NCBI GenBank assembly: GCA_964035545.1 | Contig: OZ037770.1 | Coordinates: 4,992,662-5,056,661 of the forward strand | DNA: 64,000 nucleotides | Direction of reading: 5' to 3' | Source: Bugula neritina | Lineage: Eukaryota; Animalia; Bryozoa | In this document: piece by piece, positions 13,918-64,000 of the stretch | Position numbering within the stretch: position 1 is the first letter of the stretch | Layout: the number at the start of each line of letters is the position of its first letter | The notes under the pieces: model-generated | Databases searched by the model: none | What the model was told of the DNA's origin: nothing | What the model saw: the letters and a program-made list of their open reading frames with translations, nothing else | Program-made: the position numbers and the translations under genes

Positions 13918-13918
13918 C

Positions 13919-13936: not shown

Positions 13937-13972
13937 CTCACTTAATACAAATGCCCCTAGTCAGGGAGTAAG

Positions 13973-26095: not shown

Positions 26096-26214
<119 letters not shown>

Positions 26215-27842: not shown

Positions 27843-28017
<175 letters not shown>

Positions 28018-32425: not shown

Positions 32426-33181
32426 CACAGGATAGTTAAGGGCATCCTCACTAAGAATATCATAAATTTCTCTCAAAATGTAGTTTAGGTTCTTGAATAA
32501 TATGGCTCTGTGGGTGGCATGCGTGCTGCCTACTTGTAATTGTTTAGCCTAAGATTAAACTACAACCAATAAGCAGCAACCTTCGTTAGGGCTGCGTTAT
32601 CTATCAACATTCCATTATTGGTGCTACATAAACAAAGTACAAAGCAAGCTATTCATTATAGCCTGCCAGCTAGCTAGCCTGTAATTATGATGTAGGCGCC
32701 AATATCTTCTCTTCCCTACGTGCTCAGTGAAGCGTGAAGCGCTGCGCGCTGCTAGTTTCTTATGAGAAAATATGGCATTTTCAGTGTATAAATCACCAAT
32801 TTATGAGCAATCTAGCAGAGTTATTGAAAAAAGAAAAAAAATTACACTTGAGAAATATCTCAGGATTCCAGCAGTGCAATTTTTATTCAGATATCATGCT
32901 TTGCTGCTGAGATATTTTACTGGTACTAAAAAGTCAGCTTTTCAGGCAAAATTGGCCAAAATTCGGCAGTTTTTTATCTATAACTTCGCAAAAAAAATGA
33001 AAATTGAAATTTCCAAAAAACTTACACTGGAGAAAAAGAAGATCTACAACGTAGTTTTTAAATTTTGACTCTAGCACAATTAGGTGAGATTTTATTTTAC
33101 TGGTACTGAATTCTTATATGATTACAATGCAAACCTCAGCAAGGCAGTTGCAGCTAAAAGGTTGCCCTTAACTATCCTGTG
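32426..33181 (+). mobile_element. ~755-bp MITE with CACAG termini (CMC/EnSpm-like), TA TSD
   Basis: TIR CACAGGATAGTTAAGGGCA at both ends; TA on both flanks. Confidence 0.85.
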
Positions 33182-34423: not shown

Positions 34424-35176
34424 CACAGGATAGTTAAGGGCAACCTTTTAGCTGCAACTGCCTTGCTGAGGTTTGCATTGTAATCATATAAGAATTCAGT
34501 ACCAGTAAAGTAAAATCTCACCTAATTATGCTAGAGTCAAAATTTAAAAACTATGTTGTAGATCTTCGTTTTCCCCAGTGCAAGTTTTTTGGAAATTTCA
34601 ATAATTATTTTTTTTGCCAAGTTATAGACAAAAAACTTCGCAATTTGGCCAATTTTGCCTGAAAAGCTGACTTTCCAGTACCAGTAAAATATCTCAGCAG
34701 CAAAACATGATATCTGAATAAAAATTGCACTGCTGGAATCCTGAGATATTTCTCCAGTGCAATTTTTTCTTTTTCCAATAACTCTGCTAGATTTCTCATA
34801 AATTGGTGATTTATACACTGAAAATGCTATATTTTTTCATAGGAAACTAGCAGCGTGCAGCACTTCACGCTTCAATGAGCACTTAGGGATGAGAAGATAC
34901 TGGCGCCTACATCATAATTACAGGCTTGCTAGCTGGCAGGCCATTATGAATAGCTGGCTTTGTACTTTGTTTATGTAGCACTCATAATGGAATGTTGATA
35001 GATAACGCAGCCCTAATGAGGGTTGCTGCTTATTGGTTGTAGTTTAATCTTAGGCTAAACAATTGCAAGTAGGCAACACGCATGCCACCCACAGAGCAAT
35101 ATTATTCAAGAACCTAAACTACATTTAGAAAGAAATTTATCATATTCTTAGTGAGGATGCCCTTAACTATCCTGTG
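34424..35176 (-). mobile_element. Second copy of the same ~755-bp MITE, inverted orientation
   Basis: Reverse complement of 32426-33181 with scattered substitutions; TSD not preserved. Confidence 0.85.
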
Positions 35177-38243: not shown

Positions 38244-41200
38244 ATGGCAACAGCTGGTGAGTGAATTTAAATACTATTTTATACACTTATTTCTTGGAAA
38301 GTAGAAATGTTTAAACTCTGAAGATATGTTGATATTATGCCACCGCAATATAATATATATATAGAAGTATTTTATTATCACTACTTCCTATGATACTGTT
38401 TTATGTCACCAATTAGTGTATTACTTTGAAAATAGTACAATAGATAATATTATGCAAGCAGTTGGGTTAGAGTTGTCTTATCTCAAAAGAATAAACACTG
38501 AACTATAAACTATACATTAAATGATTATTTAGAAAGAATATAAAGCTATCTAATAAAATATATGTTACTCATGGTTATGATTACTAAAATCTACCATATA
38601 ATTAATTTATTCATTCAGTAGTTGACAGGTGTCAGAATCATAGACAGCACCTGCTAGCACTGTGTAATAATTGAACTGTCACTGTATGATGTTACAGATA
38701 ATATGAGAATCTGGTTCAGACATTCTGGACAGCCTCCTGTAAGCTGGTCAGATGTCCAGTCTGCTAATACCAAGTCATATACTACTGCTGAGGTGAAACA
38801 TGAAGTTGGGAGTTATGATATCACAGATCTTAAACTGGAGGGAACCATTCCAAGTAACATTGGGGAGATTACTGGTGAAGCCCTGTGTCTATGTGTTTTT
38901 AACCTAACTGACAGAGCAAGTCTGGACAAGTGAGTGTCTACTAAGATAGCTGTGTAAATGATAAATGAGTTCAGTTGTGTAATTTATTAAATAATAATCG
39001 ATAATATAAGGTGCTGAAGCTGAGGCATATTTTTGCTCATAATATATTCATACAAAATAATATACATCAACATAGTAATATGTGCAACATTGTATGTAAT
39101 CTAAATGAGCTTATAATTGTAGAAACTAGGGAGTGTAAAACTGCCTGTACTGTTACTCAATATCATTGATTAAATCATGTTTTATGTATATATGTTTTGT
39201 CATCAACTACACAAATTAGTCAATATATTAACTTACATAGCAATTTGGAGTGAGACCTCATGTACTGTAAACTAACAGCTAACCTTGCATAATGAAGCTT
39301 CCTCTCGTTACCTTCAACATAATTTAGCTGAAAATCTTTGCTTTTCTTTGCGACAATATATCTGTTTCTTGCATGTTTTTTTGTTGAATACACAAGCAGC
39401 ATAATATCAGAATATATTTCTCGGAAATGTTGTTAAACAGCATAAAAAGAATGCCGATGCACAATATACTTTACATCTGTTTAGTATCTTGTAATCCGAC
39501 ATAAAATAGTCAAAGTCAAGAATAAGCAGCATATATAGTATATTCATTTTGATGGTGGACATAAACACATGACACACTTTATATTACAGTTTATGTCAGC
39601 TAACTCAGTTAGAGAAACTATACATAGGAGATAATCCTCTCAACACAATACCAGAAGCTGTGTCATCACTCACATCACTTGAAGAGTTGGATATGGAAAG
39701 CTGTGGATTATCTACTCTACCTGAGAGGTTTGTGTGCCAAAATATTTCCTTGGTTTCAAACCCTCAATATTTCACATTTTTAATGCTTATCAAGTAGTGT
39801 TATGCTATGTTATCATATATTGCCAACGTATATTAAAAAACCTAAGTATGCATTTTTTGAACTTATCTAAGAGTTTGTCTTAAGGTGGAAATAATATAAT
39901 TGTATGGTGTGCCATTGTATATCATTATATCACAAGAACTTTTTGTAATTATTAATAAAACAGCGATCTGTAGTTTACGTGCAACCATGGCAATGATCAA
40001 ATTTTTCTTGGGCTCTTGCGACAATCACTTTTGCTATCCATTGCCGCAATGAATTTGTTAAGGCTACTGCATTTTCTCTAGCCTGGTTGACTGCGCCTCA
40101 AGCAATATAGTATGTACGGTGTATATTATTATGACACAGTAAAATACATATATTCTACCCTTTCTGAGTATTGCAGTCTATGCCAGCTGACTCAGTTAGA
40201 GGAACTGAACATAGCAAAGAATCCTCTCAACATAGTACCTGAAGTTGTGTCATCATTCACACCACTTAAAGAGTTGTATATGAGGGTCTGTAAATTATCT
40301 ACTCTACCTGAGAGGTTTGTGGAACACAGTCTTTCTTGTTTCAAACACTCGATAATTCACATGTTGATATAATGCTTAGCAAGTATTGCTAATTAGTATG
40401 TCACTATGTATTGTTGAAAAGCATAAAGCTATAAATTAAAATTTTCTTGAGGCTATATGATATTAGAGTTTCTCAAATAACTCGAAAATAAATATGTTTC
40501 AGTTATCTGGCATTACATTTCCTATTGCTATAAAACCTTCCTTAACAAATACTATAGCACCCACTTTTTATAGTTTACTAGAATCTATTTCAAATTAAAT
40601 GTCTTTTACTTTGAATATACGTTGTCGCAATAAATTTGCTTTTTTTGCATGTTATACTTGATTGAAGACACAAGCATAGTATACAGAGTACATACTATTA
40701 TCCTGATACAGTGGATTACATATATACCATATACTTTATATTACAGTCTATGTCAGCTGACTCAGTTAGAGAAACTATACATAAGAGAGAATCCTCTCAA
40801 CACTGTACCAGAAGTTGTGTTATCATTCACATCACTTAAAGAGTTGGATATGATTTGCTGTAAATTATCTACTTTACCTGAGAGGTTTGTGGAACACAGT
40901 CTTTTTTGTTTCAAACACTCAATAATTTACATGTTGATATAATTCTTACCGTATATTGCTAATTAGTATGTCACTGTGTATTGTTGCAAAGCATAAAGTT
41001 ATAAATTATTAGTTTCTTGAGGCTATATTGTATTAGAGTGTTTCAAAACTTGAAAATAAATAATATATTTCAGTTATCTGGCATTACATTTCCTATTGCT
41101 ATAAAACCTTTTTAACTAATATTATAGCACCCACTTGTAGTTTACTATAGTGTGTATTTCTCATCAAATGGTTATTAGAGCCTTCTGTATTTCACTTTGA

Positions 41201-44200
41201 ATATGCCTTAGCGTAATAAATTTGCTACTTGGGTATTTTACTTGATTGAGTATGCAGTGCATGTTGTGATACAGTAGACTAAATATATCACATACTTTAT
41301 ATTACAGTCTGTGTCAACTGACTCAGTTAGAGAAACTATACATAGGAGATAATCCTCTCAACACAATACCAGAAGTTGTGTCATCACTCACATCACTTGA
41401 AGAGTTGGATATGGAGAGCTGTGGATTATCTACTCTACCTGAGAGGTTTGTGTGCCAAAATATTTCCTTGGTTTCAAACCCTCAATATTTCACATTTTTA
41501 ATGCTTATCAAGTAGTGTTATGCTATGTTATCATATATTGCCAACGTATATTAAAAAACCTAATTATGCATTTGTTGAACTTATTTAGGAGTTTGTCATA
41601 AGGTGGAAATGATATAGTTGCATGGTGTGCCATTGTATATCATTATATCACAAGAACTTTTTGTAATTATTAATAAAACAGCCATCTGTAGTTTACGTGC
41701 AATCATGGCAATGATCAAATTTTTCTTGGGATCTTGCGACATCACTTTTGCTATCCATTGCCGCAATGAGTTTGTTAAGGCTACTGCATTTTCTCTAGCC
41801 TGGTTGACTGCGCCTCAACCAATATTGTATGTACAGTGTAGATTATTATGACACAGTAAACTACATATATTCTACCCTTTCTGAGTATTGCAGTCTATGC
41901 CAGCTGACTCAGTTAGAGAAACTGAACATAGCAAAGAATCCTCTCAACATAGTTCCAGAAGTTGTGTCATCACTCACAACACTTAAGGAGTTGTATATGA
42001 GAATCTGTAAATTGTCCACTCTACCTGAGAGGTTTGTGGAACACAGTCTTTCTTGTTTCAAACACTCAATAATTCACATGTTGATATAATGCATAGCAAG
42101 TATTGCTAATTAGTATGTCACTATGTATTGTTGAAAAGCATAAAGCTATAAATTAAAATTTTCTTGAGGCTATATGATATTAGAGTTTTTCAAAACTTGA
42201 AAATAAATATGTTTCTGTTATCTGGCATTACATTTCCTATTGCTATAAAACCTTCTTCAACAAATACTATAGCACCCACTTGTGGTTTACTGGGATCTAT
42301 TTCACATTAAATGCTTATTAGCTTTCGGTATTTTACTTTGAATGTGCCTTGTCGCAATAAATTTGTTTCTTGAATATTTTACCTGATTGAATACGTGTCA
42401 GTTTACTTCATTTAGTACACACCAGCAAATTATGACCTAACATTAAAGTTTGCTCAAAATCCATTTAAATCTACTATACATGGTATTTTTATGTGCTGGT
42501 TTTAACTACGCATAACAGAAAAGGCTGGAAGGGGATTCCCCAACATTAAAGCACAGGTCATTGTCATATGCACTTAATATTCTATATGTGCAGACCGTTA
42601 CGAAAAATTCGTAACGGTCTGTAACCAAAACTAGCTGAACAATTAGGGAAAAACATGAGAAATGAAGCAAAATTGAAAAGAACTTTGATTATTTAGGTGT
42701 ATTTATTGGTGTTTTACTAGTTTTTACCAAAAAACCATGTTCATTACCAGTTAAATTGTGAAAAATAGCCAAAAACTGAAGATTTCGAGTGTGTACTAAA
42801 TTAATTAAAATGACCCATACACAAGTAGAGTATACACAGTATACAATAATATCTTGGTACAGTGAATTACATATATTATGCACTTTATATTACAGTCTAT
42901 GTCAGCTGACTCAGTTAGAGAAACTAAACATAGCAGATAATCCTCTCAACACAGTACCAGAAGTTGTGTCATCACTCACATCACTTAAAGAGTTGGATAT
43001 AGAGAGCTGTGGATTACCTACTCTACCTGAGAGGTTTGTGGAACACAGTCTTTTTGTTTCAAACACTCAATAATTCACATGTTGATATAATGCTTACCAA
43101 GTATTGTTAATTAGTATGTCACTATGTATTGTTGAAAAGCATAAAGCAAAAAGTTGGAATTTCTTGAGGCTATATGATATTAGACTTTCTCAAAACTCAG
43201 AGATAAATATGTTTCAGTAATCTGGCATTACATTTCCTATTGCTATAAAACCTTCCTTAACAAATACTATAGCACCCACTTTTTATAGTTTACTAGAATC
43301 TATTTCAAATTAAATGTCTTTTACTTTGAATATACGTTGTCGCAATAAATTTGTTTTTTTGCATGTTTTACTTGATTGAAGACACAAGCATAGTATACAG
43401 AGTACATACTATTATCCTGATACAGTGGATTACATATATATCATATACTTTATATTACAGTCTATGTCAGCTGACTCAATTAGAGAAACTATACATGAGA
43501 GAGAATCCTCTCAACACTGTACCAGAAGTTGTGTTATCATTCACATCACTTAAAGAGTTGGATATGATTTGCTGTAAATTATCTACTTTACCTGAGAGGT
43601 TTGTGGAACACAGTCTTTTTTGTTTCAAACACTCAATAATTTACATGTTGATATAATTCTTACCGAATATTGCTAATTAGTATGTCACTGTGTATTGTTG
43701 CAAAGCATAAAGTTATAAATTATAAGTTTCTTGAGGCTATATTGTATTAGAGTGTTTCAAAACTTGAAAATAAATAATATATTTCAGTGATCTGGCATTA
43801 CATTTCCTATTGCTATAAAACCTTTTTAACTAATATTATAGCACCCACTTGTAGTTTACTATAGTGTGTATTTCTCATCAAATGGTTATTAGAGCCTTCT
43901 GTATTTTACTTTGAATATGCCTTAGCGTAATAAATTTGCTACTTGGGTATTTTACTTGATTGAGTATGCAGTGCATGTTGTGATACAGTAGACTAAATGT
44001 ATCACATACTTTATATTACAGTCTGTGTCAACTGACTCAGTTAGAGAAACTATACATAGGAGATAATCCTCTCAACACAATACCAGAAGTTGTGTCATCA
44101 CTCACATCACTTGAAGAGTTGGATATGGAGAGCTGTGGATTATCTACTCTACCTGAGAGGTTTGTGTGCCAAAATATTTCCTTGGTTTCAAACCCTCAAT

Positions 44201-47200
44201 ATTTCACATTTTTAATGCTTATCAAGTAGTGTTATGCTATGTTATCATATATTGCCAACGTATATTAAAAAACCTAAGTATGCATTTTTTGAACTTATCT
44301 AAGAGTTTGTCTTAAGGTGGAAATAATATAGTTGTATGGTGTGCCATTGTATATCATTATATCACAAGAACTTTTTGTAATTATTAATAAAACAGCCATC
44401 TGTAGTTTACGTGCAATCATGGCAATGATCAAATTTTTCTTGGGCTCTTTCGACCATCACTTTTGCTATCCATTGCCGCAATGAATTTGTTAAGGCTACT
44501 GCATTTTCTCTAGCCTGGTTGACTGCGCCTCAACCAATATAGTATGTACAGTGTATATTATTATGACACAGTAAACTACATATATTCTACCCTTTATGAG
44601 TATTGCAGTCTATGCCAGCTGACTCAGTTAGAGAAACTGAACATAGCAAAGAATCCTCTCAACATAGTACCAGAAGTTGTGTCATCACTCACACCACTTA
44701 AAGAGTTGTATATGAGGATCTGTAAATTATCTACTCTACCTGAGAGGTTTGTGGAACACAGTCTTTCTTGTTTCAAACACTCAATAATTCACATGTTGAT
44801 ATAATGCTTAGCAAGTATTGCTAATTAGTATGTCACTACGTATTGTTGAAAAGCATAAAGCTATAAATTAAAATTTTCTTGAGGCTATATGATATTAGAG
44901 TTTTTCAAAACTTGAAAATAAATATGTTTCTGTTATCTGGCATTACATTTCCTAATGCTATAAAACCTTCTTCAACAAATACTATATCACCCACTTGTAG
45001 TTTACTGGAATCTATTTTACATTAAATGCTTATTAGCTTTCGGTATTTTACTTTGAATGTGCCTTGTCGCAATAAATTTGTTTCTTGAATATTTTACCTG
45101 ATTGAATACACAAGTAGAGTATACACAGTATACAATAATATCTTGGTACAGTGAATTACATATATTATGCACTTTATATTACAGTCTATGTCAGCTGACT
45201 CAGTTAGAGAAACTAAACATAGCAGATAATCCTCTCAACACAGTACCAGAAGTTGTGTCATCACTCACATCACTTAAAGAGTTGGATATGGAGAGCTGTG
45301 GATTACCTACTCTACCTGAGAGGTTTGTGGAACACAGTCTTTTTGTTTCAAACACTCAATAATTCAAATGTTGATATAATGCTTACCAAGTATTGTTAAT
45401 TAGTATGTCACTATGTATTGTTGAAAAGCATAAAGTTATAAATTACATATTTCTTGAGGCTATATGATATTAGAGTTTCTCAAAACTTAAAAATAAATAT
45501 GTTTCAGTTATCTGGCATTACATTTCCTATTGCTATAAAACCTTCCTTAACAAATACTATAGCACCCACTTTTTATAGTTTACTAGAATCTATTTCAAAT
45601 TAAATGTCTTTTACTTTGAATATACGTTGTCGCAATAAATTTGTTTTTTTTGCATGTTATACTTGATTGAAGACACAAGCATAGTATACAGAGTACATAC
45701 TATTATCCTGATACAGTGGATTACATATATATCATATACTTTATATTACAGTCTATGTCAGCTGACTCAGTTAGAGAAACTATACATAAGAGAGAATCCT
45801 CTCAACACTGTACCAGAAGTTGTGTTATCATTCACATCACTTAAAGAGTTGGATATGATTTGCTGTAAATTATCTACTTTACCTGAGAGGTTTGTGGAAC
45901 ACAGTCTTTTTTGTTTCAAACACTCAATAATTCACATGTTGATATAATGCTTACCAAGTATTGCTAGTTAGTATGTCACTATGTATTGTTGCAAAGCATA
46001 AAGTTATAAATTATAAGTTTCTTGAGCCTATATTGTATTAGAGTGTTTCAAAACTTGAAAATAAATAATATATTTCAGTGATCTGGCATTACATTTCCTA
46101 TTGCTATAAAACCTTTTTAACTAATATTATAGCACTCACTTGTAGTTTACCATAGTGTGTATTTCTCATCAAATGGTTATTAGAGCCTTCTGTATTTTAC
46201 TTTGAATATGCCTTAGCGTAATAAATTTGCTACTTGGGTATTTTACTTGATTGAGTATGCAGTGCATGTTATGATACAGTAGACTAAGTATATCACATAC
46301 TTTATATTACAGCCTGTATCAACTGACTCAGTTAGAGAAACTATACATAGGAGATAATCCTCTCAACACAATACCAGAAGTTGTGTCATCACTCACATCA
46401 CTTGAAGAGTTGGATATGGAGAGCTGTGGATTATCTACTCTACCTGAGAGGTTTGTGTGCCAAAATATTTCCTTGGTTTCAAACCCTCAATATTTCACAT
46501 TTTTAATGCTTATCAAGTAGTGTTATGCTATGTTATCATATATTGCCAACGTATATTAAAAAACCTAATTATGCATTTGTTGAACTTATTTAGGAGTTTG
46601 TCATAAGGTGGAAATGATATAGTTGCATGGTGTGCCATTGTATATCATTATATCACAAGAACTTTTTGTAATTATTAATAAAACAGCCATCTGTAGTTTA
46701 CGTGCAATCATGGCAATGATCAAATTTTTCTTGGGATCTTGCGACAATCACTTTTGCTATCCATTGCCGCAATGAGTTTGTTAAGGCTACTGCATTTTCT
46801 CTAGCCTGGTTGACTGCGCCTCAACCGATATTGCATGTACAGTGTATATTATTATGACACAGTAAACTACATATATTCTACCCTTTCTGAGTATTGCAGT
46901 CTATGCCAGCTGACTCAGTTAGAGAAACTGAACATAGCAAAGAATCCTCTCAACATAGTTCCAGAAGTTGTGTCATCACTCACACCACTTAAGGAGTTGT
47001 ATATGAGAATCTGTAAATTGTCCACTCTACCTGAGAGGTTTGTGGAACACAGTCTTTCTTGTTTCAAACACTCAATAATTCACATGTTGATATAATGCAT
47101 AGCAAGTATTGCTAATTAGTATGTCACTATGTATTGTTGAAAAGCATAAAGCTATAAATTAAAATTTTCTTGAGGCTATATGATATTAGAGTTTTTCAAA

Positions 47201-50200
47201 ACTTGAAAATAAATATGTTACAGTAATCTGGCATTACATTTCCTATTACTATGAAAACTTCTCCAATAAATACTATATCGCCAACTTGTAGTTTACTGGA
47301 ATCTATTTTACATTAAATGCTTATTAGCTTTCGGTATTTTACTTTGAATGTGCCTTGTTGCAATAAATTTGTTTCTTGAATATTTTACCTGATTGAATAC
47401 GTGTCAGTTTACTTCATTTAGTACACACCAGCAAATTATGACCTAACATTAAAGTTTGCTCAAAATCCATTGAAATCTACTATACATGGTATTTTTATGT
47501 GCTGGTTTTAACTACGCATAACAGAAAAGGCTGGAAGGGGATTCCCTAACATTAAAGCACAGGTCATTGTCATATGCACTTAATATTCTATATGTGCAGA
47601 CCGTTACGAAAAATTCGTAACGGTCTGTAACCAAAACTAGCTGAATAATTAGGGAAAAACATGAGAAATGAAGCAAAATTAAAAAGAACTTTGATTATTT
47701 AGATGTATTTATTGGTGTTTTACTAGTTTTTACCAAAAAACCATGTTCATTACCAGTTAAATTGTGAAAAATAGCCAAAAACTGAAGATTTCGAGTGTGT
47801 ACTAAATTAATTAAATTGACCCATACACAAGTAGAGTATACACAGTATACAATAATATCTTGGTACAGTGAATTACATATATTATGCACTTTATATTACA
47901 GTCTATGTCAGCTGACTCAGTTAGAGAAACTAAACATAGCGGATAATCCTCTCAACACAGTACCAGAAGTTGTGTCATCACTCACATCACTTAAAGAGTT
48001 GGATATAGAGAGCTGTGGATTACCTACTCTACCTGAGAGGTTTGTGGAACACAGTCTTTTTGTTTCAAACACTCAATAATTCACATGTTGATATAATGCT
48101 TACCAAGTATTGTTAATTAGTATGTCACTATGTATTGTTGAAAAGCATAAAGCAAAAAGTTGGAATTTCTTGAGGCTATATGATATTAGACTTTCTCAAA
48201 ACTCAGAGATAAATATGTTTCAGTAATCTGGCATTACATTTCCTATTGCTATAAAACCTTCCTTAACAAATACTATAGCACCCACTTTTTATAGTTTACT
48301 AGAATCTATTTCAAATTAAATGTCTTTTACTTTGAATATACGTTGTCGCAATAAATTTGTTTTTTTGCATGTTTTACTTGATTGAAGACACAAGCATAGT
48401 ATACAGAGTACATACTATTATCCTGATACAGTGGATTACATATATATCATATACTTTATATTACAGTCTATGTCAGCTGACTCAATTAGAGAAACTATAC
48501 ATAAGAGAGAATCCTCTCAACACTGTACCAGAAGTTGTGTTATCATTCACATCACTTAAAGAGTTGGATATGATTTGCTGTAAATTATCTACTTTACCTG
48601 AGAGGTTTGTGGAACACAGTCTTTTTTGTTTCAAACACTCAATAATTTACATGTTGATATAATTCTTACCGAATATTGCTAATTAGTATGTCACTGTGTA
48701 TTGTTGCAAAGCATAAAGTTATAAATTATAAGTTTCTTGAGGCTATATTGTATTAGAGTGTTTCAAAACTTGAAAATAAATAATATATTTCAGTGATCTG
48801 GCATTACATTTCCTATTGCTATAAAACCTTTTTAACTAATATTATAGCACCCACTTGTAGTTTACTATAGTGTGTATTTCTCATCAAATGGTTATTAGAG
48901 CCTTCTGTATTTTACTTTGAATATGCCTTAGCGTAATAAATTTGCTACTTGGGTATTTTACTTGATTGAGTATGCAGTGCATGTTGTGATACAGTAGACT
49001 AAATGTATCACATACTTTATATTACAGTCTGTGTCAACTGACTCAGTTAGAGAAACTATACATAGGAGATAATCCTCTCAACACAATACCAGAAGTTGTG
49101 TCATCACTCACATCACTTGAAGAGTTGGATATGGAGAGCTGTGGATTATCTACTCTACCTGAGAGGTTTGTGTGCCAAAATATTTCCTTGGTTTCAAACC
49201 CTCAATATTTCACATTTTTAATGCTTATCAAGTAGTGTTATGCTATGTTATCATATATTGCCAACGTATATTAAAAAACCTAAGTATGCATTTTTTGAAC
49301 TTATCTAAGAGTTTGTCTTAAGGTGGAAATAATATAGTTGTATGGTGTGCCATTGTATATCATTATATCACAAGAACTTTTTGTAATTATTAATAAAACA
49401 GCCATCTGTAGTTTACGTGCAATCATGGCAATGATCAAATTTTTCTTGGGCTCTTTCGACAATCACTTTTGCTATCCATTGCCGCAATGAATTTGTTAAG
49501 GCTACTGCATTTTCTCTAGCCTGGTTGACTGCGCCTCAACCAATATAGTATGTACAGTGTATATTATTATGACACAGTAAACTTCATATATTCTACCCTT
49601 TATGAGTATTGCAGTCTATGCCAGCTGACTCAGTTAGAGAAACTGAACATAGCAAAGAATCCTCTCAACAATAGTACCAGAAGTTGTGTCATCACTCACA
49701 CCACTTAAAGAGTTGTATATGAGGATCTGTAAATTATCTACTCTACCTGAGAGGTTTGTGGAACACAGTCTTTCTTGTTTCAAACACTCAATAATTCACA
49801 TGTTGATATAATGCTTAGCAAGTATTGCTAATTAGTATGTCACTATGTATTGTTGAAAAGCATAAAGCTATAAATTAAAATTTTCTTGAGGCTATATGAT
49901 ATTAGAGTTTTTCAAAACTTGAAAATAAATATGTTTCTGTTATCTGGCATTACATTTCCTAATGCTATAAAACCTTCTTCAACAAATACTATATCACCAA
50001 CTTGTGGTTTACTGGAATCTATTTTACATTAAATGCTTATTAGCTTTCGGTATTTTACTTTGAATGTGCCTTGTCGCAATAAATTCGTTTCTTGAATATT
50101 TTACCTGATTGAATACACAAGTAGAGTATACACAGTATACAATAATATCTTGGTACAGTGAATTACATATATTATGCACTTTATATTACAGTCTATGTTG

Positions 50201-53200: not shown

Positions 53201-56200
53201 TGTACATGTCAAGCAGCGCTTCAGCTACAGTAGCTGAATCAATGTTCTTCAATGGTGTAGCATAGTCAACTAAAGTTAGGATGTAGCGGTGTCCTTTCTC
53301 ACTTGGAGGGTTAATTGGTCCGATTAGGTCTATTGCACATCTTTTGAATGGGGTGTCAATTAGTGGAGTTTCCTGTACTGGAACTTTCATGACTGAGCCT
53401 TTTTTCACCGTCTTCTGGCAAATGTCACATGACTGACAGAAACGTACGACATCTCCGTTTAGTCCTGGCCAGAAGAAGTTGGAAAGTACTCTATCAGTGG
53501 TTTTCTTTACTCCTAGGTGTCCGCTCATTATTCAGTCATGAGCTTTCTGAAAAACTTCCTTTCTCAGTGAACTGGGTACCATGAGTTGTTTAACAGGTTT
53601 TACACTGACAGACTTCGAGTCGGTGTACTCACGGTACAGAATCCTCTTCCTCACCACAAACCTAGTGGTGCATCCCTTTTTCTCCTTCACTTCTTTTGCA
53701 TCGAAGAAACGTTCCAATGTGGGGTCATCCCTCTGCAGTCTGGCTATCTCATCTTTCGCTATACTTAATGGGTTAGCATTTGAATCAATCATCAGTGGTT
53801 TGTCTCCTGACTTTTCTTTGACAGCTTGAGCTCTTGTGGTTACGGCGCAGTCCTTCCAGTTTTCTAGCAGCTGGTCAGCTGATCTTGCTCCATCCACATT
53901 CCCAATAAGCAGGTCACAAATCGTTTTGTCCATTACTGCAGCTTTGACAACACCATTGTAAAATGGTGAGCGCACTGAGATAAGTGCCCACTGAGCCTCC
54001 CTAACACTTGCATCAGCCATATTCAGATAAACTGATTCTCCAGTTAGGTATTGAGGTTGCACATACTGTGCATTGACTACAATGCAACCACAGCCGGTGT
54101 CGCGCATTACAGTAGCTCGTTGGCCATTAACTTCCGCATCAAATATCGCTGTGCCCCCATCTTTGAATTTAAGTCCATTCTTGCAGACAGCAGCGTTGAC
54201 AAACTTTTTACCATTAACTGTAATTTCCATAAGTTCTTCCACTTTAGATGAGATTCCTGGATCTGTGACCACAGTCTTATTCTGAGTAGTAGCTATTGCA
54301 GCAGCAGCATGCACTGACCTCCCACCATACTTTCTGCAGTCTGAAGTATTGTGGTTGTTCATCTTGCAATGTGAACAGTACTTCTTCCCTCTCTGTGGGC
54401 AGTTACGAGCAATGTGTGACTTATCTTTGCAGATGAAGCATGCCCCATAGCTTTTACTTCCTTGTTCAGCATTCATGCTACCGGCAGGTGTGTTTTCCAT
54501 CCTTTTTGTATTAGTTCTCTTTGTCTTTGCTAGTTTCCTTCTACGAGCGTGCAAGAACAGTGACGCTGCATCACACATATCCTCACTGCTGTTGTAGGAA
54601 CTATGCTTTAAATGCACAGCTAGGTCGTCTGGGCATGATGATACAAATTGTTCAGTCGCCACTAGTTTGGCTATGTCCATGCCCCCTGAAAGCTCCACCC
54701 ACTTGTGCACATAATTTTCTATCCTAGTGAACAGCTGGGCAGGGGTTTCATCCTTGTAAGCTTCTGCCTCTCTGAGCTTTTTTCTGTAGCCCTCTTGTGT
54801 CAAGTTAAAGCGCTCCAACAAGGCTTCTTTAATTTTTTTATAATCTCTACGATCAGGAAGGTGACAACCGGATGTAAGCTTCTGTTGCCGTACCCCATAG
54901 GTACTGACTGAGATGGTAGGGCCAATCTCCCTTGTCCCAGTTACATCCTTCGGCAACCCACTCGAATTGCTCTAAATAGCTATCCATTTCATCCACCTTC
55001 TCATCAAAGAATGGTATTTTTGGTTTTGGTTTGTTAGCTGTTTCTAACCTGGCGCTTTCATGTCTTGAGTGCTCCAAACTTGTGTTATCTTTCAGCTTTT
55101 CCATATCTAATTCATGTCGTTGTCTTCTCTCTTCTGCCTCCTGGTCAGCTTTTATCTTCATCTCCATTAAGGCTTTCTCATTTTCTTGCTTGATCCTTTC
55201 TGCCTCACGCTAATTTACGCTCCTCTCGGTCCTTATCTTTTTTCTCTCGGTCCTTTTCTTTTTCCTCTCGTGCCTTTTCTTTTTCCTCTTGTGCAGCAAC
55301 AATGGGTAGGTTCTTTTCAACAAAAGCTACGAGCTTTTCCTCCACCAAACCAAGATCTTTACCCATCTGTGTCACTCTCTCCAACAACGCCATGATGTCT
55401 CAACAACTGCTAATTAATCCTGTGTATGCTCACGTTGTAACAGATAATTTCTCTGTGTGCGACTGAGACTTCCCGGAGCAGCCCCCAATTGTCACAAAAC
55501 TGTTGGTAGTAGTGTGACGAGTTCGAAAGGTCTGGTAGTCAGAAGTGTGTAGGCAAGTAGCATACAGCTTGCTAATCTAGTTGAGAGTAAATAGAGTTGT
55601 GAATATAAGTAGACTTTATTCCTCCAGTAAGATATGCATAGATAAACTTTTAAAAATGAACTCATTTGTAAACACAACTGCCTCAGTATTTATAGTAAAC
55701 AAAAAAACTCTAGGACATTCTCAAGCATTCTAGTAGAAAACATTCCCCACATGCCAATACTATTTAGATAGAAAATCGAAACAAAACAAAGCATTGGAAT
55801 TTCCATGGTTATTTCGCAATTATTGCGCAACACCTTGTTTACATTGCTGAGCAGTAGTTAACATGACTAACGAAAACAGTAACAATGAACAATTAGTCTG
55901 GCAGAACTGGGGGTTAGGTTCGCAATCTCCGATAAAGTTTTTTTCTCTCTTGATTATTTATCTTGAGGGTCCAGGTAAATGTTTCCAGGTGGGTGTGGAC
56001 CCACCACCCTTGAGCATTTCGAGAAATCCAAGATGGCCGCCAATTATGGAAAAATTGTCATCTAATAGGCATAAAGTTTATATTATGTTGCAAAAACAAA
56101 AGTTTTTTGATGATTCAAATAGATGTGCATTTTTGGAATGAATATGTGCCATGCCAGTGCAAAATTAATCAAAGTTAAGAGCCAAGAGACATGTTGTTCA

Positions 56201-59200
56201 GCTAAAAAATCGAAATTGCTTCAATAAAACAATCACATATAGTGCAAAGAAATGATACAAGGTTTTTAAATAATTGTTTGGACAGATATATTAAGAAAAA
56301 CATTGCTTATTACCAGTGAATAGAAAGTGAAAAAGAGATACAGAGGCATATTGCTCAGCTAAAGTTGAAATGGAACATATTATATATATATAACCATACA
56401 GATGTGACAAACTTTAGCTCATGTTCATATTAAACACCTTTCTCATTTTTTTCTATCATTAGAATTTGTTAGAAATGTTAGTTCATTGCAGCACACTCCT
56501 GTTACTGCTTCACAAGGGCAGAACTCTGTGCATGGGATAGATGTACTAGAATAGCCATATCTCCTTGTTTTGCATGATTGTTGGCTTCCACAGGAGCATT
56601 TAATGAATTTGGGCCATTTTACTTTATTTAGCACACATCAGCAGATTATGATCAAAAATTTTAAAGTTTGCTCAAAATTCATGAAAACTTACTATATAGA
56701 GTAGTAGAATTTGCTAATTCTAACTATGCATAGCAAAAAAACTGGGAAGAGGCCTTGCAACATTTAAGCGCGGCGTCATGTCATACGAGCTAAATATATA
56801 TTTGTGAACCATCACGGTCTATATAATATCTCAATGTACTAATAAATTAGGAAAAAAACATAGAAAATCATGCAAAATTGGAAAAGCCTCAATTATTCAG
56901 TTTATTTGTTAAAATTTTAATAGTTTGAGACAAAAATCTATATACAATAGCAGCTAAATTGTAAAAAATCGCCAAAAACTAATATCATTGAGTGTACACC
57001 AAATTAAGTAAAATGATCTACTTCATAATACTGTCTGGTGTAAGCACAACATCATTTCCGACTCTTTTTGGGAAAAGAGATTCGATTAGATCTCTTTTCA
57101 CCTACCAATGTTCTAGTAGGTTTAATGCCGCAGTTTTATATGGCTCCTGGAGGTGTGCTCTGGTGACATTGTCCAATAGCTTTATCTGTAGGAGGCAAAG
57201 TACATAAGTTAAAGGCACATCGCAAATAGCATTGCTGACCTTAGTTTTCTAAGCTTTTTGTCTTGTAGATGTCATGGAAGAGCACTTTGCATAAGGGTAG
57301 CAACATAGCATAAACCTGGTAGCTTGTATGAATAGTCATCCTGAAAAGAAGCCCTAGTGTCACCAAATTACACTTTTCTTCTACCAAGACATTTAGTATG
57401 ACTCCCTTTCCAATATTTTACATTGTTGCCACTGTATCACACTCTGAGAGGTCATGGGACGGCAGCAAATTGTCTATTATAGGGATTTGTCTCAAACTTT
57501 CTCACCTAGTGTGCTGTGGTCTAGGATGGGTGGCAATTTTGCAGGGCACCAAGTGCTATCAGAGAGTGTCATCTGATTCTGTCGTCAAAATCTTTATCTG
57601 AAAGGCCACATTTCAGTATTTCATCCTTCATTAGATCCATTAACCGTTTCTTTGGCCTCCCTCTCTTTCTCTGTATCTTTATCTCAGCCACCATTATAAT
57701 ACACAGTTAGTTTAAGGTCATAACTTTCCACATTCAGGCACTGCTTTATGTTATATATAAACGGTTTCCAGGGGATAGCTCGAACAGTTTTTGTCTCACA
57801 TTAACAAATTTTACATGAAAAGATGGCTCTTGCATTCCTCTTTCATATACTTTTTTGATTTTTCAATAAAAAATTTTCTGAGAAAGTTGTTGCATAATAA
57901 GTAAAATTTTACACCCTCCATGTTCCACTGCTGTAGCACAGGGGATTCATTTTATAAAGTCTAAAAGTTAAACTTGACATTCCTTGATATGTTTTCTCTA
58001 ATATACTTTCTTTGTTTTTTGAAATTCTGTTTATGCTCTTCACAATTTGGTAAAAACATACACCATATTGCAAGTTTCACTGCAATTATCTAAATTCTTC
58101 ATATGGTGGTTCTAGCTACGCTCCTGTGACTAATTATAACATTCCTAGTACGTTTGCCGCTGTGTGCTATCACAATAACATATAGTACCCTCTCGCACAA
58201 ATTGGCAATCTATTGGATTTCTGCCAATATAATGTTCCCTGTTTTACATTAGCACTTAGCTGAATCATCTCACTATGTTACAATAATATATTGAAAATGC
58301 CTCAGCACAACATAATTCTTTGTTTGTTTGGCAGAGTTAATTTCAGCTAAATCACTTCACTTTGCAGTCTTGTCAGTAAAGGTTTCTCTAATTCACATAT
58401 GATTATTTTAAGTACATTGTATTCTATAAGATCATTTCAAGGTTTAGTCCAGTGTTCAGTATCTAATTATTATGCATGTATGTTGTCTTACTGGTGAACA
58501 AAAGTTAAAAAAAAACTTTACAATTATAGCCATATTTATTATACATGCGTAGGATTTGCATAAGTTGACAAAAAAATTGCAACAAATCAGGGTTGAACCA
58601 TGACCAACCAACTCGTCTCTGACGCCTCTAACGCCTCTAACCTCTGGACCACGCTGTGATCGTAAAAGCGGCGCGCATTATATGAGTAACTATCATTACA
58701 TAAATATTTCGCTCGCAAATGGGTTATAATTATTAGGCTGTCAATTCATGTTGATAGCAGTCAACTGTTGCAATAGTCTCGGGTTACTATCAAAGCTAAT
58801 GGTTTTGAACAAATAACCCAAAAGTTTAAAAATAAGTAGCTTGCGTATTACTAGCTACAAAAACAGGTCTGAAATAGACTGGTAAAGCAAGCTCTTATTG
58901 TAGAGTTTGCAGATGTGCTCTAAAATAAAACTTAAACTGTATGCTATTACATAAGTATTTGTATGCGAGAGATATAAATGGACATTACTGAGTTTCTGGA
59001 AAACAACATACTTGAAGTTAACTTTGACAATGGTGTTTTCTTTTCATCATAGCTAGCCTATAGCATAAATCTCTAATCATATGAATCTTTATGAAGCCCA
59101 CAGCTCATGTAAGGGTGGCAATGTAATTTGAAACGAACAATTATGTTGCTGCATTGTGTCTAAGGTATATTAGAGAGCAGAATTTGGTTTTACTAGCCTA

Positions 59201-62200
59201 CCCCAACGGCATTCTACAATGCAGCTTATATGCTGGCAGTTGTAATAAGTACTGCCAATAGCAAGGTTACTATCACTGCTAGCTCTGTGCAGTATGTAAC
59301 CTCTTGAATAATTGCGCCAATTTTAAACTCTTGGAAGTTGGCCAAGTTATCATATCGCAGCCAGCCACCGGAGACAAAGCATCAGACCTATTCATATAAT
59401 ATTATACTGATGCACTTGGTAGCAGAGTGGCTAATCTAATATAGTTCATAGTTCAACACCCTTTACTTTGGGAATACAGCCTCTTTTTTTAGGTTTACCT
59501 TACAAAGCATGAAAATATCTAAACTGATATTCTGATAATTTAGAGGTACATTTTGAAAACTAGGTTAATTGCACTTGTTTGCACAACAACAATAATAAAA
59601 TAGATATTATGCCGTATAATAAAAACACACATAATACTATATAATATATTATAATGATAATAATATAATATTATAAGTACCATTACTGCATTTTATAAAT
59701 CACATGGTTGCCAAAAAAATGTATCACAAATTTTGTAATTATACATCAAAACTAGAACTAGCTAGGCAGCAGGTTAGAATAGAGTAAATTTTTAAAACAT
59801 GAAATCATGATTTGACTATTGTTTTATTTAGGCCAACCAACCTAGGAATACAAGATTGGGTTTTAGCTGACAGTTTATTATAACATTTAGCTTTTGAGCC
59901 AGCAGCACTGGCACTTTTGAAGTATAGGCAAAGTTAGTGAAGCGAGACTAACAAGCACTCAAATACAAGGCATATTGAGACGCAATAACAAGTCAGGAGC
60001 GTATAAATTGATAAGAATGTGGAAGGGGGACTATGTTTTTCAACAAGCTATAACTTAAACATGAATTGGCTTTTGAAAAAAATAAAAAAGTATATTGGAG
60101 AACATAACTTTCTTTATCTTTTCATATTTTTTTTGTTCCTGTGACATTCAACCTGTTCGAGCTATCAGTGGAACATTGTTCATATAGAACATAAAGCACC
60201 TGGCAAAGAGCCAGAAAATGAAAAGTATGACCTTAAACTAACTGTGTATCTTTTTCCTATCCTTTCTGCGCACATGTCCACACCATTGAAGAGGTTTCCT
60301 CTTCGTGCCTATTGCGATGGTTTTTATTTTGGCCTCCTCTCTTATATTATCACATGTTACATGGTCTTCCCACTCTAAATTGTAAATGTGTCGAAGCATC
60401 CTCATCTCAGTTGCACTTATCTTGTCTTCTTGTCTTTGAGTCAGTGGCCATGTCTGATATCCATACATCAGTGTAGTTTTTATTGCCATCTTGGATAACA
60501 GAACCTCCAGCTTAGTGGAAATTTTCTTATCTTCTTGTCGCGGACTGTTCTGAAAACTCAATTTTCATAGATTTTTTTAAAATTGACTTGGTCTTAGTTT
60601 TTCTTATTTTCCCTGTTTCCTTGAATGTAGAAGGTGGCAATGCTGCAAGTTTATGAGCCATTAAAGAGTCCGCATCCAAATTCTTGGTCTGCTTGAGTAC
60701 AATGGTTCGGGCATATATGACTTCAGTATCATACACAGTGGTATTAAAAACCTTAATATGCCTTTGAGATGATACCATTGTCTTCACTTAAGATATACAA
60801 GGATTTATTTAACCCCTCCGACTAATTCACTTTAAATTCTTGTATAGATGCTTTACCTATAACAAAAATATTGTCAATAATTATTGCTGAATAACTGATG
60901 ACTTTCTCTGTTTCAATATTGACAAGAGCAGCTGGGTGGCATTCTTCTTTGAGTAAGACATTGCAGAGTTCAATCTTCTTTTTGACAAACCTTCTGTTCC
61001 TTGAATCAGATTAGATTCTTGATTGCATCTCTTCCTTATGAGTAGTGGAAGCATTTATTTCAGACTCATCTCTGATGTCACTGAGGCCTTACTGTATCTT
61101 GTTGCATGCAGATCGAAGTGCTATACACCCACACCTTGACAATTTCAGTTTTATTGGTGATGCCAATGGTTCCCCCTTGCTGTGGCCAAATCTCACGAAG
61201 GTCACCTCAATGGTCATGTTTGACCAGATGCCATTGAGCTGGCCGAGTTTATGATGCATTGTGTGATTACCAGCCACGAATTCAATCCTTACATCTTGTG
61301 GCATGATCTACATGCTATACAGATATAAATACATTTCCTCTTCCATTGCTAGGTGTAAGGCCCAGTCTCCTTCTCTATCAGCTATGATGTGGGTGTTGAT
61401 GGTAAAATTTGGTCTAATAAAGCACATGACCCACAGTTTTGCTGTTCTTGAGCTCTCTGAAATCTTAGTCAACATCTTTTCAAGGTTCTCCATGCTAGTG
61501 ATTACACTTTCATCAAAGACTGGCTTCAACAGCTCTCCCACCAATATTCTCAGGCCCAGTACATTCTGGGAAGACTTTTTTTATTTAGCATTTTGGGGAA
61601 ACTGCCAAAAGTAGAATTAAATACTTTTACCAAATCCGTTTCAACCATTAGTGTTCCATTACACTGAACATAGGTCATTAAAGTGGAAAAATTAGTTGTA
61701 ATTTTTTATGAAAGGAGGTTGGTATGAAAAAGGTAGGGAACCATTGTTCTAATGGATGTATCACTTCCCCCAGCATAAAATAGATTCTTATTCATAAAAA
61801 AAACTGTTTACAAATGTTTTTAGAGATAAAGTCATATGTGCTGATTGTAGAAGGAGTTTTTGAAAGCAAAAATGTCAATATTTAGATAAATGATGTGTCA
61901 ATAATAATGCAATTAAATTATGTTAAGAAGTCATGGTGTTGTGTTATTAAGGTTGTTGGCCCCTTTTTCTAACTTTAAAAAACATGGCTAAAGTTTTAAA
62001 ACTGAAAATAACTTTTAAATTGGCAGCTCAACAAACCTTTTTGATAGGCATGCTAGTTTGAAACAAATTGCTATTTAGCACACATGACAATGGCGTTGCA
62101 TTTCAATTTTGCAGAACCGCCTTTAGTTTTATTTGTTGGACATATTTGTAATCAGCATTTAAAATTACCCCATACAGTAAATTTTCATGAATTTAGAACA

Positions 62201-64000
62201 AACTGATGCAGAGATGCAAGGAAATTATAAACACGGCAAGGCTAGGTTAAACTTAAAAAAATGAATGATTAGGGCTTAGCTTAGTTACCCTTAGGGATCA
62301 TTTGCCTATTACTAAAGAATACACATGATAAAGGCACATACATCTTTATTATATTAATTTCTAAAGATTTCAAAGCATTGGAACCTTAAATTTAGCCTCG
62401 GTGGGTAGATACATTTGAATTATAAAGAATCATCTAGTGCCTAGCAGCCATCTTGAATTTCTCAAAATGCTCAAGGGTAAGAAGTCCACATCCACCTGGA
62501 AACATTTACCTAGACCCTATATTTGAATAATCAGAAGAGAAAAAAACCTTTATCCGGGAGTGCGAACCTAAGTCAAAAATTGGTGTTTTTCTGCCAGACT
62601 AAATGACCCATCTCTTTGATTAGTCTAGAATATTTATGAACATTCCTGTATTCTCATTAGGAAAAACCCGGTAAGTCTATAGGTATATGTACACTCAGAA
62701 TTTGTGACATTATTGTTATACTAATATTGGGTATCTGTATGAAAACTATTATATCAATTACCTGTAGTTAGTTCTAATAATAGAAGTACTATATATTATT
62801 AGAATACAGAGACTACAGAAGTTACAGGAACTCAACATTTCACAAAATAACTTCACCAGTCTACCATCTTCAGTGTGTGCATTGAGTAATCTGCACACAC
62901 TAAATATATCCTACAACAGATCCATGAAATCTTTGAACCCTGAGATACTACAGCTAACACATCTTGGGTCCTTCAATACAGATGGATGTAATGCTCTAAC
63001 ATCTCCTCCACAAGAAGTCTGTAAAAGAGGACTCGATGCTGTGCGACAATACTACACAGACTTGGCTGAAGGTGCTGGTAGAAATCTTCCATTTGCGACA
63101 ATAGCAGTGTTGGGGAACACCATGGCAGGTAAAACCAGTCTAATTCGAACATTACAGAGCACTGACAGGAAGAGAGTTCTGACTGACAGAAGTCTTAATG
63201 CAGAGCATGATGAGACCACAAAGGTGTTTAATGTGGAAGAGGTGGAGGTGGATGGTACAACTCTTCGTCTCATAGATATGGGAGGCCAGGAGGTCTACCA
63301 TATCACATACCATTTAACAATGAGACAGAATTGTGTACCAGTCATTGTAGTCAACATGGAGCAGTATGATCAGATTTCGAAAATATCTACAGACAGAGAG
63401 GCTGTGAGAAAGCTGGCTTTTGACTTCATATCTCACCTCTATCTCGCTCATCCATCTCTTGGCCCACCTAAGCTTGTTTTCACACACAAGGACAAGTTTC
63501 CGAGGGAAGTTTTCCAACAGCTTCGAAGAAATTTTCTTGAAGTGTCTGAGCAGTTATGCAAAAATATTCTTGAAGAAGAGAAAAGTTTAGAAGGTGACTT
63601 TGCTCGAATTCAACATTTCACTGAATCAAATGGAAAAATCTTTGAAAAGGAAAGCATCTATGAGGTTGGGAAATTTGATGAGTACAAGATATTCGAATTG
63701 ATTAAAAAATCTCTTCTTCAAAGTTGCCAACAATTTATCAAACTCCTTCCAAAAGTCTGGGAGGATGTCAACACAAAAGTATTGTCATTGCAGTCTGCAC
63801 ACAATACCTTTGATGAAATCTTGGCAGAGATAAAGAAAGAACGGAATGACATTGATAGAAACCAATTAGATACGATTATCATGTACATGCATGATTGTGG
63901 AAAAGTTCTCTGGTATAGGAATATTGATGCACTCAGGCCATACATATTTCACAAGATCACGGAAGTTACCAAACTACTGTGTGTCTTGTATCACCATGAT
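38244..64000 (+). CDS. LRR-ROC-COR (ROCO family, MFHAS1/LRRK-like) gene, 3'-incomplete in this window
   Basis: Model: 38244-38256 (gccATGG, MATA, phase 1), 38698-38929 (ends phase 2), 18 phase-2/phase-2 LRR exons 39590-50329, a 12.5-kb intron, then 62803->64000 (starts phase 2; LRRs, ROC, COR). All phases are compatible except cassette 17 (139 nt). Confidence 0.85.
38698..38929 (+). CDS. ROCO gene N-terminal exon
   Basis: ttacag acceptor, gtgagt donor; open frame (D)NMRIWFRHSGQ...DLKLEGTIPSNIGEITGEALCLCVFNLTDRASLD; phases fit both neighbours. Confidence 0.75.
42395..42816. mobile_element. Sola-like MITE in an LRR-array intron
   Basis: TSD ATAC; the empty site GATTGA-ATAC-ACAAGTAG is visible in paralogous introns near 45100 and 50107. 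Confidence 0.9.
47401..47822. mobile_element. Sola-like MITE, duplicated along with the array
   Basis: Same insertion site and TSD (ATAC) as 42395-42816, 5006 bp downstream. Confidence 0.9.
52283..55393 (-). pseudogene. Disrupted gag-PR-IN-(RT deleted)-RNase H C-terminus
   Basis: Gag fragments with frameshifts; two CCHC knuckles (CFICKDKSHIARNC, CSHCKMNNHNTSDC); protease RDTGC; integrase AHD*..GHLG..CDIC, AIDLIGP, SDQG, GPF; then a jump near 52410 to the RNase H end (RLAMYLQNF...NVGADYLSR). Confidence 0.88.
56611..57019. mobile_element. Diverged Sola-like MITE inside the Academ-like element
   Basis: Termini GGGCCATTTTACTTTATTTAGCACAC / GTGTACACCAAATTAAGTAAAATGATCT; interior resembles the 30265 copy; interrupts ...DSIMK|FIKCSCG. 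Confidence 0.75.
57540..60527 (-). mobile_element. 5'-truncated RTE-like LINE fragment split by a later insertion
   Basis: TTLMYGYQTWPLT...EMRMLRHIY...LQWCGHVRRKD (about 60527-60249) continues as VAEIKIQRKRGRPKKRLMD (about 57699-57570). Confidence 0.75.
57702..60246. mobile_element. 2.5-kb non-autonomous CACAG-ended TIR element, TA TSD
   Basis: TIR CACAGTTAGTTTAAGGTCATA / TATGACCTTAAACTAACTGTG; TA on both flanks; removing it rejoins the LINE fragment. Confidence 0.85.
62803..64000 (+). CDS. ROCO exon: final LRRs, ROC GTPase, start of COR (open to window end)
   Basis: Frame from 62804 without stops: IQRLQKLQELNISQNNFTSLPSSVCALSNLHTLNISYN...LTSPPQEVCKRGLDAVRQYY; P-loop GNTMAGKTS (63113-63139); DMGGQEVYH (from 63275); THKD (63482-63493); COR-type LPKVW and YMHDCGKVLWY. 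Confidence 0.93.

Follow-up and report, generated by a model that had tools for sequence, protein, structure and literature searches.

The 64,000-nt stretch of Bugula neritina DNA analysed here (the window) carries a gene whose LRR domain is spread over a long series of short, near-identical exons, and it raises the question of whether and how such a gene varies its ligand-binding surface: by recombination of exon units in the germline, by choice among them during splicing, or by rearrangement in somatic cells. Positions refer to the window unless another locus is named, and all exons of the gene lie on the + strand.

Exon plan of the gene and its continuation beyond the window

The gene opens with a 13-nt start-codon exon (38244..38256), assigned by phase fit and conserved in both neighbour genes; in three RNA runs, family transcripts join position 38256 to the N-terminal exon. 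This N-terminal exon (38698..38929) comprises 77 codons, runs from phase 1 to phase 2 and is a probable LRR N-cap; Pfam and Atlas searches with it gave no match, and it has 62 matches across the genome. The exon array that follows (39590-50329) consists of 18 LRR cassettes, each flanked by AG...GT and in phase 2 at both ends, 17 of them being 138 nt long (46 codons, or two 23-residue LRRs). Cassettes 1-4 lie at 39590-39727 (type A), 40177-40314 (B), 40747-40884 (C) and 41308-41445 (A), cassettes 5-8 at 41894-42031 (B), 42896-43033 (D), 43461-43598 (C) and 44022-44159 (A), cassettes 9-12 at 44609-44746 (B), 45185-45322 (D), 45752-45889 (C) and 46313-46450 (A), cassettes 13-16 at 46900-47037 (B), 47902-48039 (D), 48467-48604 (C) and 49028-49165 (A), and the terminal cassette 18, of type E, at 50192..50329. 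Cassette 17 (B type; 49615..49753) is the single 139-nt unit: it carries one additional A near 49670, is otherwise identical to its twin, cassette 9, and has a frameshift with an in-frame stop. The modular array of near-identical phase-2 exons described in the first-pass annotation is recovered, as is its in-frame modularity, since the start-codon exon, N-terminal exon, cassettes and following exon join in phase and any subset of cassettes preserves the reading frame. The donor site of every cassette departs from consensus at +3/+4.

An exon of 2,003 nt encoding an LRR cap, ROC and COR in an open frame extends from 62803 to 64805, past the window end, where it stops at L011:1466 of the locus in which the gene continues. 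Two linker exons (L011:1705-1791 and 2357-2508) and five caspase exons (L011:4171-4343, 4585-4798, 4942-5172, 5432-5535 and 5980-6129) follow, placed by their phases and by comparison with paralogues. Because the reading continues past the window into these caspase exons, the gene has the order LRR-ROC-COR-caspase; the layout first proposed holds for the cap/ROC/COR exon but not for a gene end at COR.

Domain searches on the spliced model, run exon by exon, detected Pfam Roc on the central exon at 31-32 bits (cut-off 27), with the G1-G4 motifs GNTMAGKTS, DETT, DMGGQ and THKD in the translation. The COR-A match is weak (E 4.5e-5, under the curated cut-off) and lies at the position expected directly after ROC; PF16095 is carried by relatives. 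NACHT and NB-ARC were not found on the central exon, for which Pfam reports ROC instead. The Roc score, together with matches of this exon to LRRK1/2 and bacterial Roco proteins, confirms the assignment to animal ROCO genes. Peptidase_C14 scores above cut-off on two caspase exons, the His-Cys dyad of the domain being found in the motifs THG and EACSG. Compared with three paralogues, caspase exon 1 is 2 bases longer in an (AG)n run, which shifts the frame; the caspase is not in frame with ROC-COR here, a stop following residue 1623 even when cassette 17 is omitted. This second frameshift, the C-terminal caspase outside the window and the family of more than 100 genes described below were missing from the first-pass account.

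Duplication history and copy number of the array

The cassettes are of five types, arranged ABC ABDC ABDC ABDC ABE; the earlier count of 18 modules stands, but they are not all different. The five types were multiplied by recent 4-exon and 5,006-bp duplications, which appear in the self-similarity of the array as a 5,006-bp shift at 98.0% and a 2.29-kb shift at 97.1%. The 5,006-bp tandem block duplication (40136..50335; 40136-45328 versus 45148-50335) shows patchy divergence of 0-9%, with some stretches 99.9% identical. Cassette 18 is a mosaic, its upstream intron being of D type and its downstream intron nearest to that of the upstream paralogue's last cassette. This terminal module and the block-duplication pattern bear out the proposal that unequal recombination or tandem duplication enlarged the array; PHI, applied to 36 exons, detected no significant recombination within exons. 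A MITE-like insertion with no assigned strand occupies the intron preceding cassette 6 (42387..42822) and has its block copy at 47393-47828. The last array intron holds a nested transposon insertion (51713..62709, - strand), whose outer part is a broken gypsy-type LTR element with a 5-bp target duplication; the second LTR of this element contains a 6.7-kb element that has inverted ends. A near-identical paralogue lies at C6:4.80 Mb.

An 18-unit array could arise in part as an artefact if two haplotypes or reads had been joined in tandem, a reading suited by the 99.9% identity in parts of the 5-kb repeat and by the two indels, which hint at imperfect polishing. In run X1, short-read contigs over the repeated introns have 3.3-3.6 times the depth of single-copy flanks. 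The ratio expected from the assembly is 3.3-3.5, and from a model lacking one 5-kb unit 1.7-1.9, so that three intron contigs agree with the full assembly and not with the shorter model. One exon contig fits less well and is shallower than predicted (1.6 observed, versus 2.4 from the assembly or 1.1 with one unit fewer). The 5' flank of the array is single-copy, and the divergence between units is graded as well as patchy. Because short-read depth agrees with the assembled copy number, the array is probably not a misassembly, and we consider a partial artefact highly unlikely.

The gene records array growth well, with four cassette types recently amplified. Two frameshifts and 11 kb of transposon in one intron make it probable that this copy is decaying or truncated, within a family that evolves by birth and death. 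Assembly errors may account for both indels, which lie in slippage-prone sequence, and the second frameshift, in caspase exon 1, suggests either such errors or a decaying copy.

Selection, splicing and the possibility of somatic change in a large paralogue family

A genome search for ROC-COR paralogues with cassette exons, suggested alongside the first-pass annotation, returned at least 104 ROC-COR, 128 caspase-exon and 316 cassette-start matches, all three being minimum counts. Members of this very large family lie in clusters, and the neighbour genes, with 14 and 8 cassettes, share the exon plan of the 18-cassette gene. At the family level, RNA shows splicing at the predicted sites. Across the genome, exon-wise scans, which may miss genes, returned a single weak match to NACHT and none to NB-ARC. 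Our literature search found no description of an LRR-ROC-COR-caspase family in bryozoans or other animals.

Sequence-level work on the family covered three full genes. In the 18-cassette gene, concave-face codons have an omega of about 4.6 (p 7e-5), compared with 0.6 elsewhere, and the M1a/M2a comparison restricted to this gene yields only p 0.03; over the three genes the concave-face omega is 5.3 and the selected cassette codons are 11, 13, 14, 34, 36, 37, 39 and 3, all codon tests assuming a single tree, an assumption that recombination violates. ROC-COR has a pN/pS of about 0.3, i.e. it is under purifying selection. The predicted ligand face is under diversifying selection, in line with the varied binding surface first proposed. 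Distinct binding-face signatures number six in 17 cassettes here, and 14 in 14 and 8 in 8 in the neighbours.

With moderate confidence, we read these genes as candidate immune or cell-death receptors, each a single chain, which evolve by birth and death and have diversified in the germline; the 18-cassette gene is probably a decaying or truncated member. Since the two-LRR units are each encoded by a phase-2 exon set in a homologous intron module, unequal crossing-over in the germline gains, loses and swaps units with the frame intact, as the duplication pattern shows; selection then diversifies the concave-face codons, as the codon statistics show. By analogy with ROCO proteins and initiator caspases, the LRR arm may bind an intracellular non-self or damage ligand, whereupon ROC-COR would shift its nucleotide and dimer state, the attached caspases would be brought together and cut, and the outcome would be defence signalling, or cell or zooid death. 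The immune or allorecognition role first suggested for the array gene is putative. Alternatively, the family might be non-immune, its members serving as scaffolds or regulating developmental cell death (in polypide regression, for instance), with the array reflecting neutral tandem-repeat turnover. Neutral expansion of tandem arrays does occur and the 18-cassette copy appears broken, but a concave-face omega well above 1 beside a purified ROC-COR, and the size and clustering of the family, leave this reading only a slim chance.

Most likely, all cassettes are spliced in constitutively. We consider it unlikely, while giving it the most weight among the alternatives, that cells skip subsets of cassettes and so produce many sensor isoforms per gene. 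This combinatorial splicing would benefit from the frame kept by any subset and from the non-consensus donors, and omitting cassette 17 would leave the frame open into ROC-COR. LRR splice variants occur in algal ROCOs, including some of Ectocarpus (PMC11378527), and one RefSeq model omits a Watersipora cassette, but two further Watersipora models leave none out. Skip-like RNA joints were present in short-read contigs, which cannot tell skips from paralogue junctions; their short side is just 20-33 letters and exactly matches paralogue junctions, the first cassettes of the neighbours starting like cassettes 5 and 6. The joints were rejected as evidence of exon skipping because of these matches, and the earlier proposal of combinatorial splicing gains no support from them. 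With six face signatures only, the gain would mostly be in length and order. There is no conserved intron structure: flank-to-cassette complementarity of the docking/selector kind was not above chance, with no consensus fold and a mean z of about 0. Palindromes upstream of the acceptors were discarded as RNA structures, having neither a conserved fold nor a z-score excess.

Somatic DNA rearrangement or gene conversion in the style of lamprey VLRs would yield zooid- or cell-specific receptors. The near-identical intron modules would suit homologous recombination, and colonial animals propagate somatically; the germline gene, though, is complete, with splice sites for each cassette, and run X1 DNA depth is near the assembled copy number. 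A scan for RSS-like motifs gave zero matches and, as noted, no docking/selector-like signal was found, so such somatic change is very improbable. Germline diversification remains the preferred reading.

Relation to known receptors and meaning for bryozoans

The brown-algal parallel drawn earlier is upheld. LRR-ROCO genes of Ectocarpus and Saccharina form a large family with many pseudogenes, encode one repeat per symmetric phase-2 exon and show positive selection on the concave face (PMC3341825, PMC11378527), features that the LRR-ROC-COR core, cassette exons, concave-face selection and family size of the bryozoan genes resemble. The algal exons are 72 nt long (one LRR), whereas those of the two bryozoans are 138 or 141 nt (two LRRs); unlike the algal genes, the bryozoan ones carry a caspase after COR and lie in tandem clusters, and splice variants are reported for the algal ROCOs (PMC11378527). 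The two arrays are likely of independent origin. Closer in plan are the 'MFHAS1 homolog' RefSeq proteins of Watersipora subatra (XP_067935483.1, XP_067940460.1 and XP_067935480.1), which have LRR, ROC and caspase in a single chain, the same domain order and two-LRR phase-2 cassette exons, but with cassettes of 141 nt, 2-7 per gene (three loci), at about 32% identity; they come from automatic annotation only, and our literature search found no study of them. Owenia fusiformis has a comparable lophotrochozoan ROC-caspase fusion, a single gene mentioned in passing as a caspase with a ROC pro-domain, for which an LRR array, expansion and selection are not described (PMC11463336). In bacteria, ROC-COR is mentioned in conflict systems, in passages that note no caspase fusion.

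Humans have four ROCO genes (PMC11378527). The vertebrate proteins MFHAS1/MASL1 and LRRK1/2 share the LRR-ROC-COR core, with a kinase or no enzyme where the bryozoan genes have a caspase. We know of no recently duplicated cassette array in them. Lamprey VLRs and arthropod Dscam likewise set variable modules, whether repeats or exons, beside a fixed frame; VLRs, however, are extracellular and somatically assembled from an incomplete gene, whereas here the cassettes lie within a complete gene, and the exons of Dscam are mutually exclusive and rely on docking/selector pairing, which was not found in the bryozoan array. Animal NLRs with their inflammasomes and plant NLRs share the combination of LRR sensor, nucleotide switch and death effector in birth-and-death clusters, but the bryozoan switch is a ROC GTPase, not NACHT/NB-ARC, joined in one chain to the caspase.

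A bolder possibility, which we think doubtful, is that more than 100 one-chain LRR-ROC-COR-caspase receptors have largely replaced NLRs in bryozoans, with cassettes recombined between genes and combinatorially spliced, giving colony- or zooid-specific repertoires for cell death triggered by pathogens or allorecognition. The value of the finding rests with the family; its frameshifts make the 18-cassette copy ill suited to experiments. If the receptor reading is true, the family would be an animal counterpart of the exon-shuffled ROCO receptors of brown algae, whose own caspase would offer a measurable readout, through which the triggers of the ROC-COR switch, and the recognition of pathogens and non-self by colonial bryozoans, could be tested.

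Exon plan and domain layout

The gene opens with a 13-nt ATG exon (starting at 38244) and a 232-nt N exon (38698–38929), followed by the cassettes. A motif scan counts exactly 18 of them from 39590 to 50329, all bounded by AG and GT. Seventeen of the 18 are 138 nt long and encode two 23-residue LRRs apiece, the lone exception being cassette 17, with 139 nt. Every cassette is entered and left in phase 2, which also fits the cap/ROC/COR exon at 62803; the first-pass annotation, which had placed an array of this kind between fixed flanking exons, was right on the anatomy. The cassette donors (39728–50335) read GTTTGT, off-consensus at +3/+4, whereas GTRAGT-like donors are found in the other exons of the gene and in the cassettes of Watersipora. 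The last array intron measures 12.5 kb, most of it an 11-kb nested transposon insertion: a broken gypsy-type element (51713–62709) has its second LTR split by a 6.7-kb element (55894–62601) that has inverted ends and is flanked by a 3-bp target duplication.

The ROC-COR exon runs on for 805 bases past the edge of the window, which lies at G000:C6:4992662–5056661 on its contig in the 216-Mb genome. Further downstream, locus L011 carries two linker exons and then five exons with Pfam Peptidase_C14 matches and His and Cys motifs. In profile and structure searches, run exon by exon on the separate exons of the gene, the Pfam ROC match was above cut-off and a weak COR-A match fell at the expected place. 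The solved structures nearest to the cap-ROC part are LRRK1/2, 6hlu, and 3dpu, the last two being entries for the Chlorobium Roco protein.

As assembled, the gene is broken twice. Cassette 17 has one base too many, giving a stop after residue 848. With cassette 17 omitted, the frame stops after residue 1623, owing to an (AG)n run in caspase exon 1 that is two bases longer than in three paralogues. The other 39 cassettes across the three genes are intact and the majority of the 104 ROC exons have open frames, so the assembly is in general low in noise; both breaks, however, sit at slippage-prone sites and may be assembly errors. In the upstream 14-cassette paralogue (L007, G000:C6:4987054–4989071), the ROC-COR frame is cut at 460 residues, so that two adjacent copies look broken.

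The window also contains, on the plus strand, a gypsy-type LTR retrotransposon (13509–21111) that inserted very recently: its two 409-bp LTRs are identical, its target duplication is 4 bp, and it has long frames for protease/RT/RNase H and for integrase. A MITE-like repeat of 435 bp, with a near-perfect palindrome of 31 bp at its centre, occurs at 30257–30690, 42387–42822, 47393–47828, and 56615–57016, and both DNA and RNA runs cover it very deeply. The remaining features are a minisatellite (10626–11343; 51 copies of a 14-bp unit), a tandemly duplicated segment of about 2.6 kb that contains (TA)n runs plus a 760-bp inverted repeat pair of 93.7% identity (24359–28821 and 32422–35179), and a 167-codon open frame without Pfam match on the minus strand (5274–5774).

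Growth and copy number of the array

The cassettes fall into five exon types in the order ABC ABDC ABDC ABDC ABE. A 5,006-bp duplication (40136–45328 versus 45148–50335) aligns at 98.0% and has the same MITE-like insertion in both copies, while a four-exon shift of 2.29 kb aligns at 97.1%. Divergence within the 5-kb repeat is patchy (0 to 9% per 400 bp), and cassette 18 is mosaic: its upstream intron is of D type, 0.8% from that of cassette 10, and the module including the downstream intron has its nearest match in the final cassette of the upstream paralogue. Unequal crossing-over fits both patterns. The six concave-face positions show 6 distinct signatures in 17 cassettes, against 14/14 and 8/8 in the neighbours; the array thus owes its 18 members to recent amplification and does not represent as many specificities.

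That the array might be a misassembly of a few exons was examined by comparing contig depths in the DNA read run X1 with 31-mer counts predicted by the assembly or by a model minus one 5-kb unit. X1 carries the haplotype of this gene, as three contigs cover its unique 5' part, which is single-copy, without differences and at depths of 119–138. Over the repeated introns, contig depths of 403, 432, and 398 correspond to 3.3–3.6 times single copy, where the assembly predicts 3.5, 3.3, and 3.3 and the shortened model 1.7, 1.8, and 1.9. One exon contig, of whose two differences one is rebuilt, gave 1.6, between the predicted 2.4 and 1.1. Depths of contigs are only approximate, and X1 may come from the very colony that was assembled; the intron depths nevertheless argue against collapse to a few exons, and misassembly is highly improbable. 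Separately, the exon at 62804–64000 shares at most 42% of sampled words with any public run (10–20% in most), which points either to paralogues collapsed in the contigs or to colonies that differ strongly in haplotype.

A bryozoan gene family and selection on its predicted concave face

Genome-wide searches for the subfamily returned at least 104 ROC-COR, 128 caspase-exon, and 62 N-exon matches and at least 316 cassette starts, largely clustered. In contrast to the more than 100 ROC-COR loci, scans of the genome found a single weak NACHT match and none to NB-ARC, both counts being lower bounds. Both neighbours, with 14 and 8 cassettes, share the exon plan. Loci L002 and L003 (C6:4809019 and C6:5109053), separated by 300 kb, are nearly identical in their ROC-COR exons, with 5 differences, but have unlike N exons (84% and 76% to the query) and, judging from match positions, apparently at least 12 versus 8 cassettes, which suggests gene-to-gene recombination within the array.

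The nearest named protein relatives are from Watersipora subatra, whose RefSeq proteins join LRR, ROC, and caspase in one chain and are encoded with 141-nt phase-2 cassettes, 2–7 per gene in three loci examined; the LRR-ROC-caspase cassette design is thus common to two bryozoan families. In one Watersipora locus, a fifth intact 141-nt cassette (L031:28355–28495) is missing from the RefSeq model XP_067935480.1, whether because of a splice choice or as an artefact of prediction. The ROCOs of brown algae have LRR exons of 72 nt in phase 2, with selection on the concave face, numerous pseudogenes, and splice variants (PMC3341825; PMC11378527), and a ROC-caspase has been noted once, in the annelid Owenia (PMC11463336). 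The open-access literature searched contains no description of bryozoan ROCO or ROCO-caspase families with cassette arrays.

Among the five types, the two LxxLxLxxN motifs have six concave positions with a pN of 0.39, compared with a pS of ~0.1 in the remainder of the exon, and these positions account for half of the amino-acid differences (permutation p 0.001). They are assigned to the concave face by the LRR consensus; the modelled structure of a Watersipora homologue has the strand-helix repeat that would be expected. Codon models, in which recombination can inflate tests of selection, gave omega of 4.6 at concave sites versus 0.6 for the rest in the 18-cassette gene (LRT 15.9, p 7e-5) and 5.3 versus 0.5 over three genes. 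Without prior choice of sites, an M2a-type model picked codons 11, 13, 14, 34, 36, 37, 39, and 3 over the three genes and codon 36 only in the 18-cassette gene alone (p 0.03). ROC-COR is under purifying selection relative to its paralogues (pN/pS about 0.3).

Splicing and mode of diversification

Three runs that are probably RNA cover the exons and the MITE but hardly any other intron sequence, and joints occur at donors 38256 and 38929 and at cassette boundaries: the family is spliced at the predicted sites. Some joints that resemble skips, linking the N exon with cassette 5 or 6, were rejected as evidence of skipping, their 23–27-letter short sides being the exact start of the two neighbours' first cassettes. 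At site 38871, every covering RNA contig, from two runs, differs from the 18-cassette gene. The RNA contigs of the three runs show neither cassette skipping nor expression of this gene itself, and substantial combinatorial splicing, one source of variation proposed in the first-pass annotation, seems unlikely. An RSS-like motif, docking/selector complementarity, and a conserved intron fold were looked for at the array and none was found; somatic rearrangement of cassettes appears very improbable.

The analysis shows exons that are modular and in frame, duplication in the germline, selection acting on a single face, and an LRR-ROC-COR-caspase layout throughout the family. A non-immune role is rather improbable. 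Ligand binding to the LRR arm would shift the ROC-COR dimer or its nucleotide state, the attached caspase could then be activated by proximity, and this may lead to defence signalling or local cell death. The family probably diversifies in the germline, with mainly constitutive splicing.
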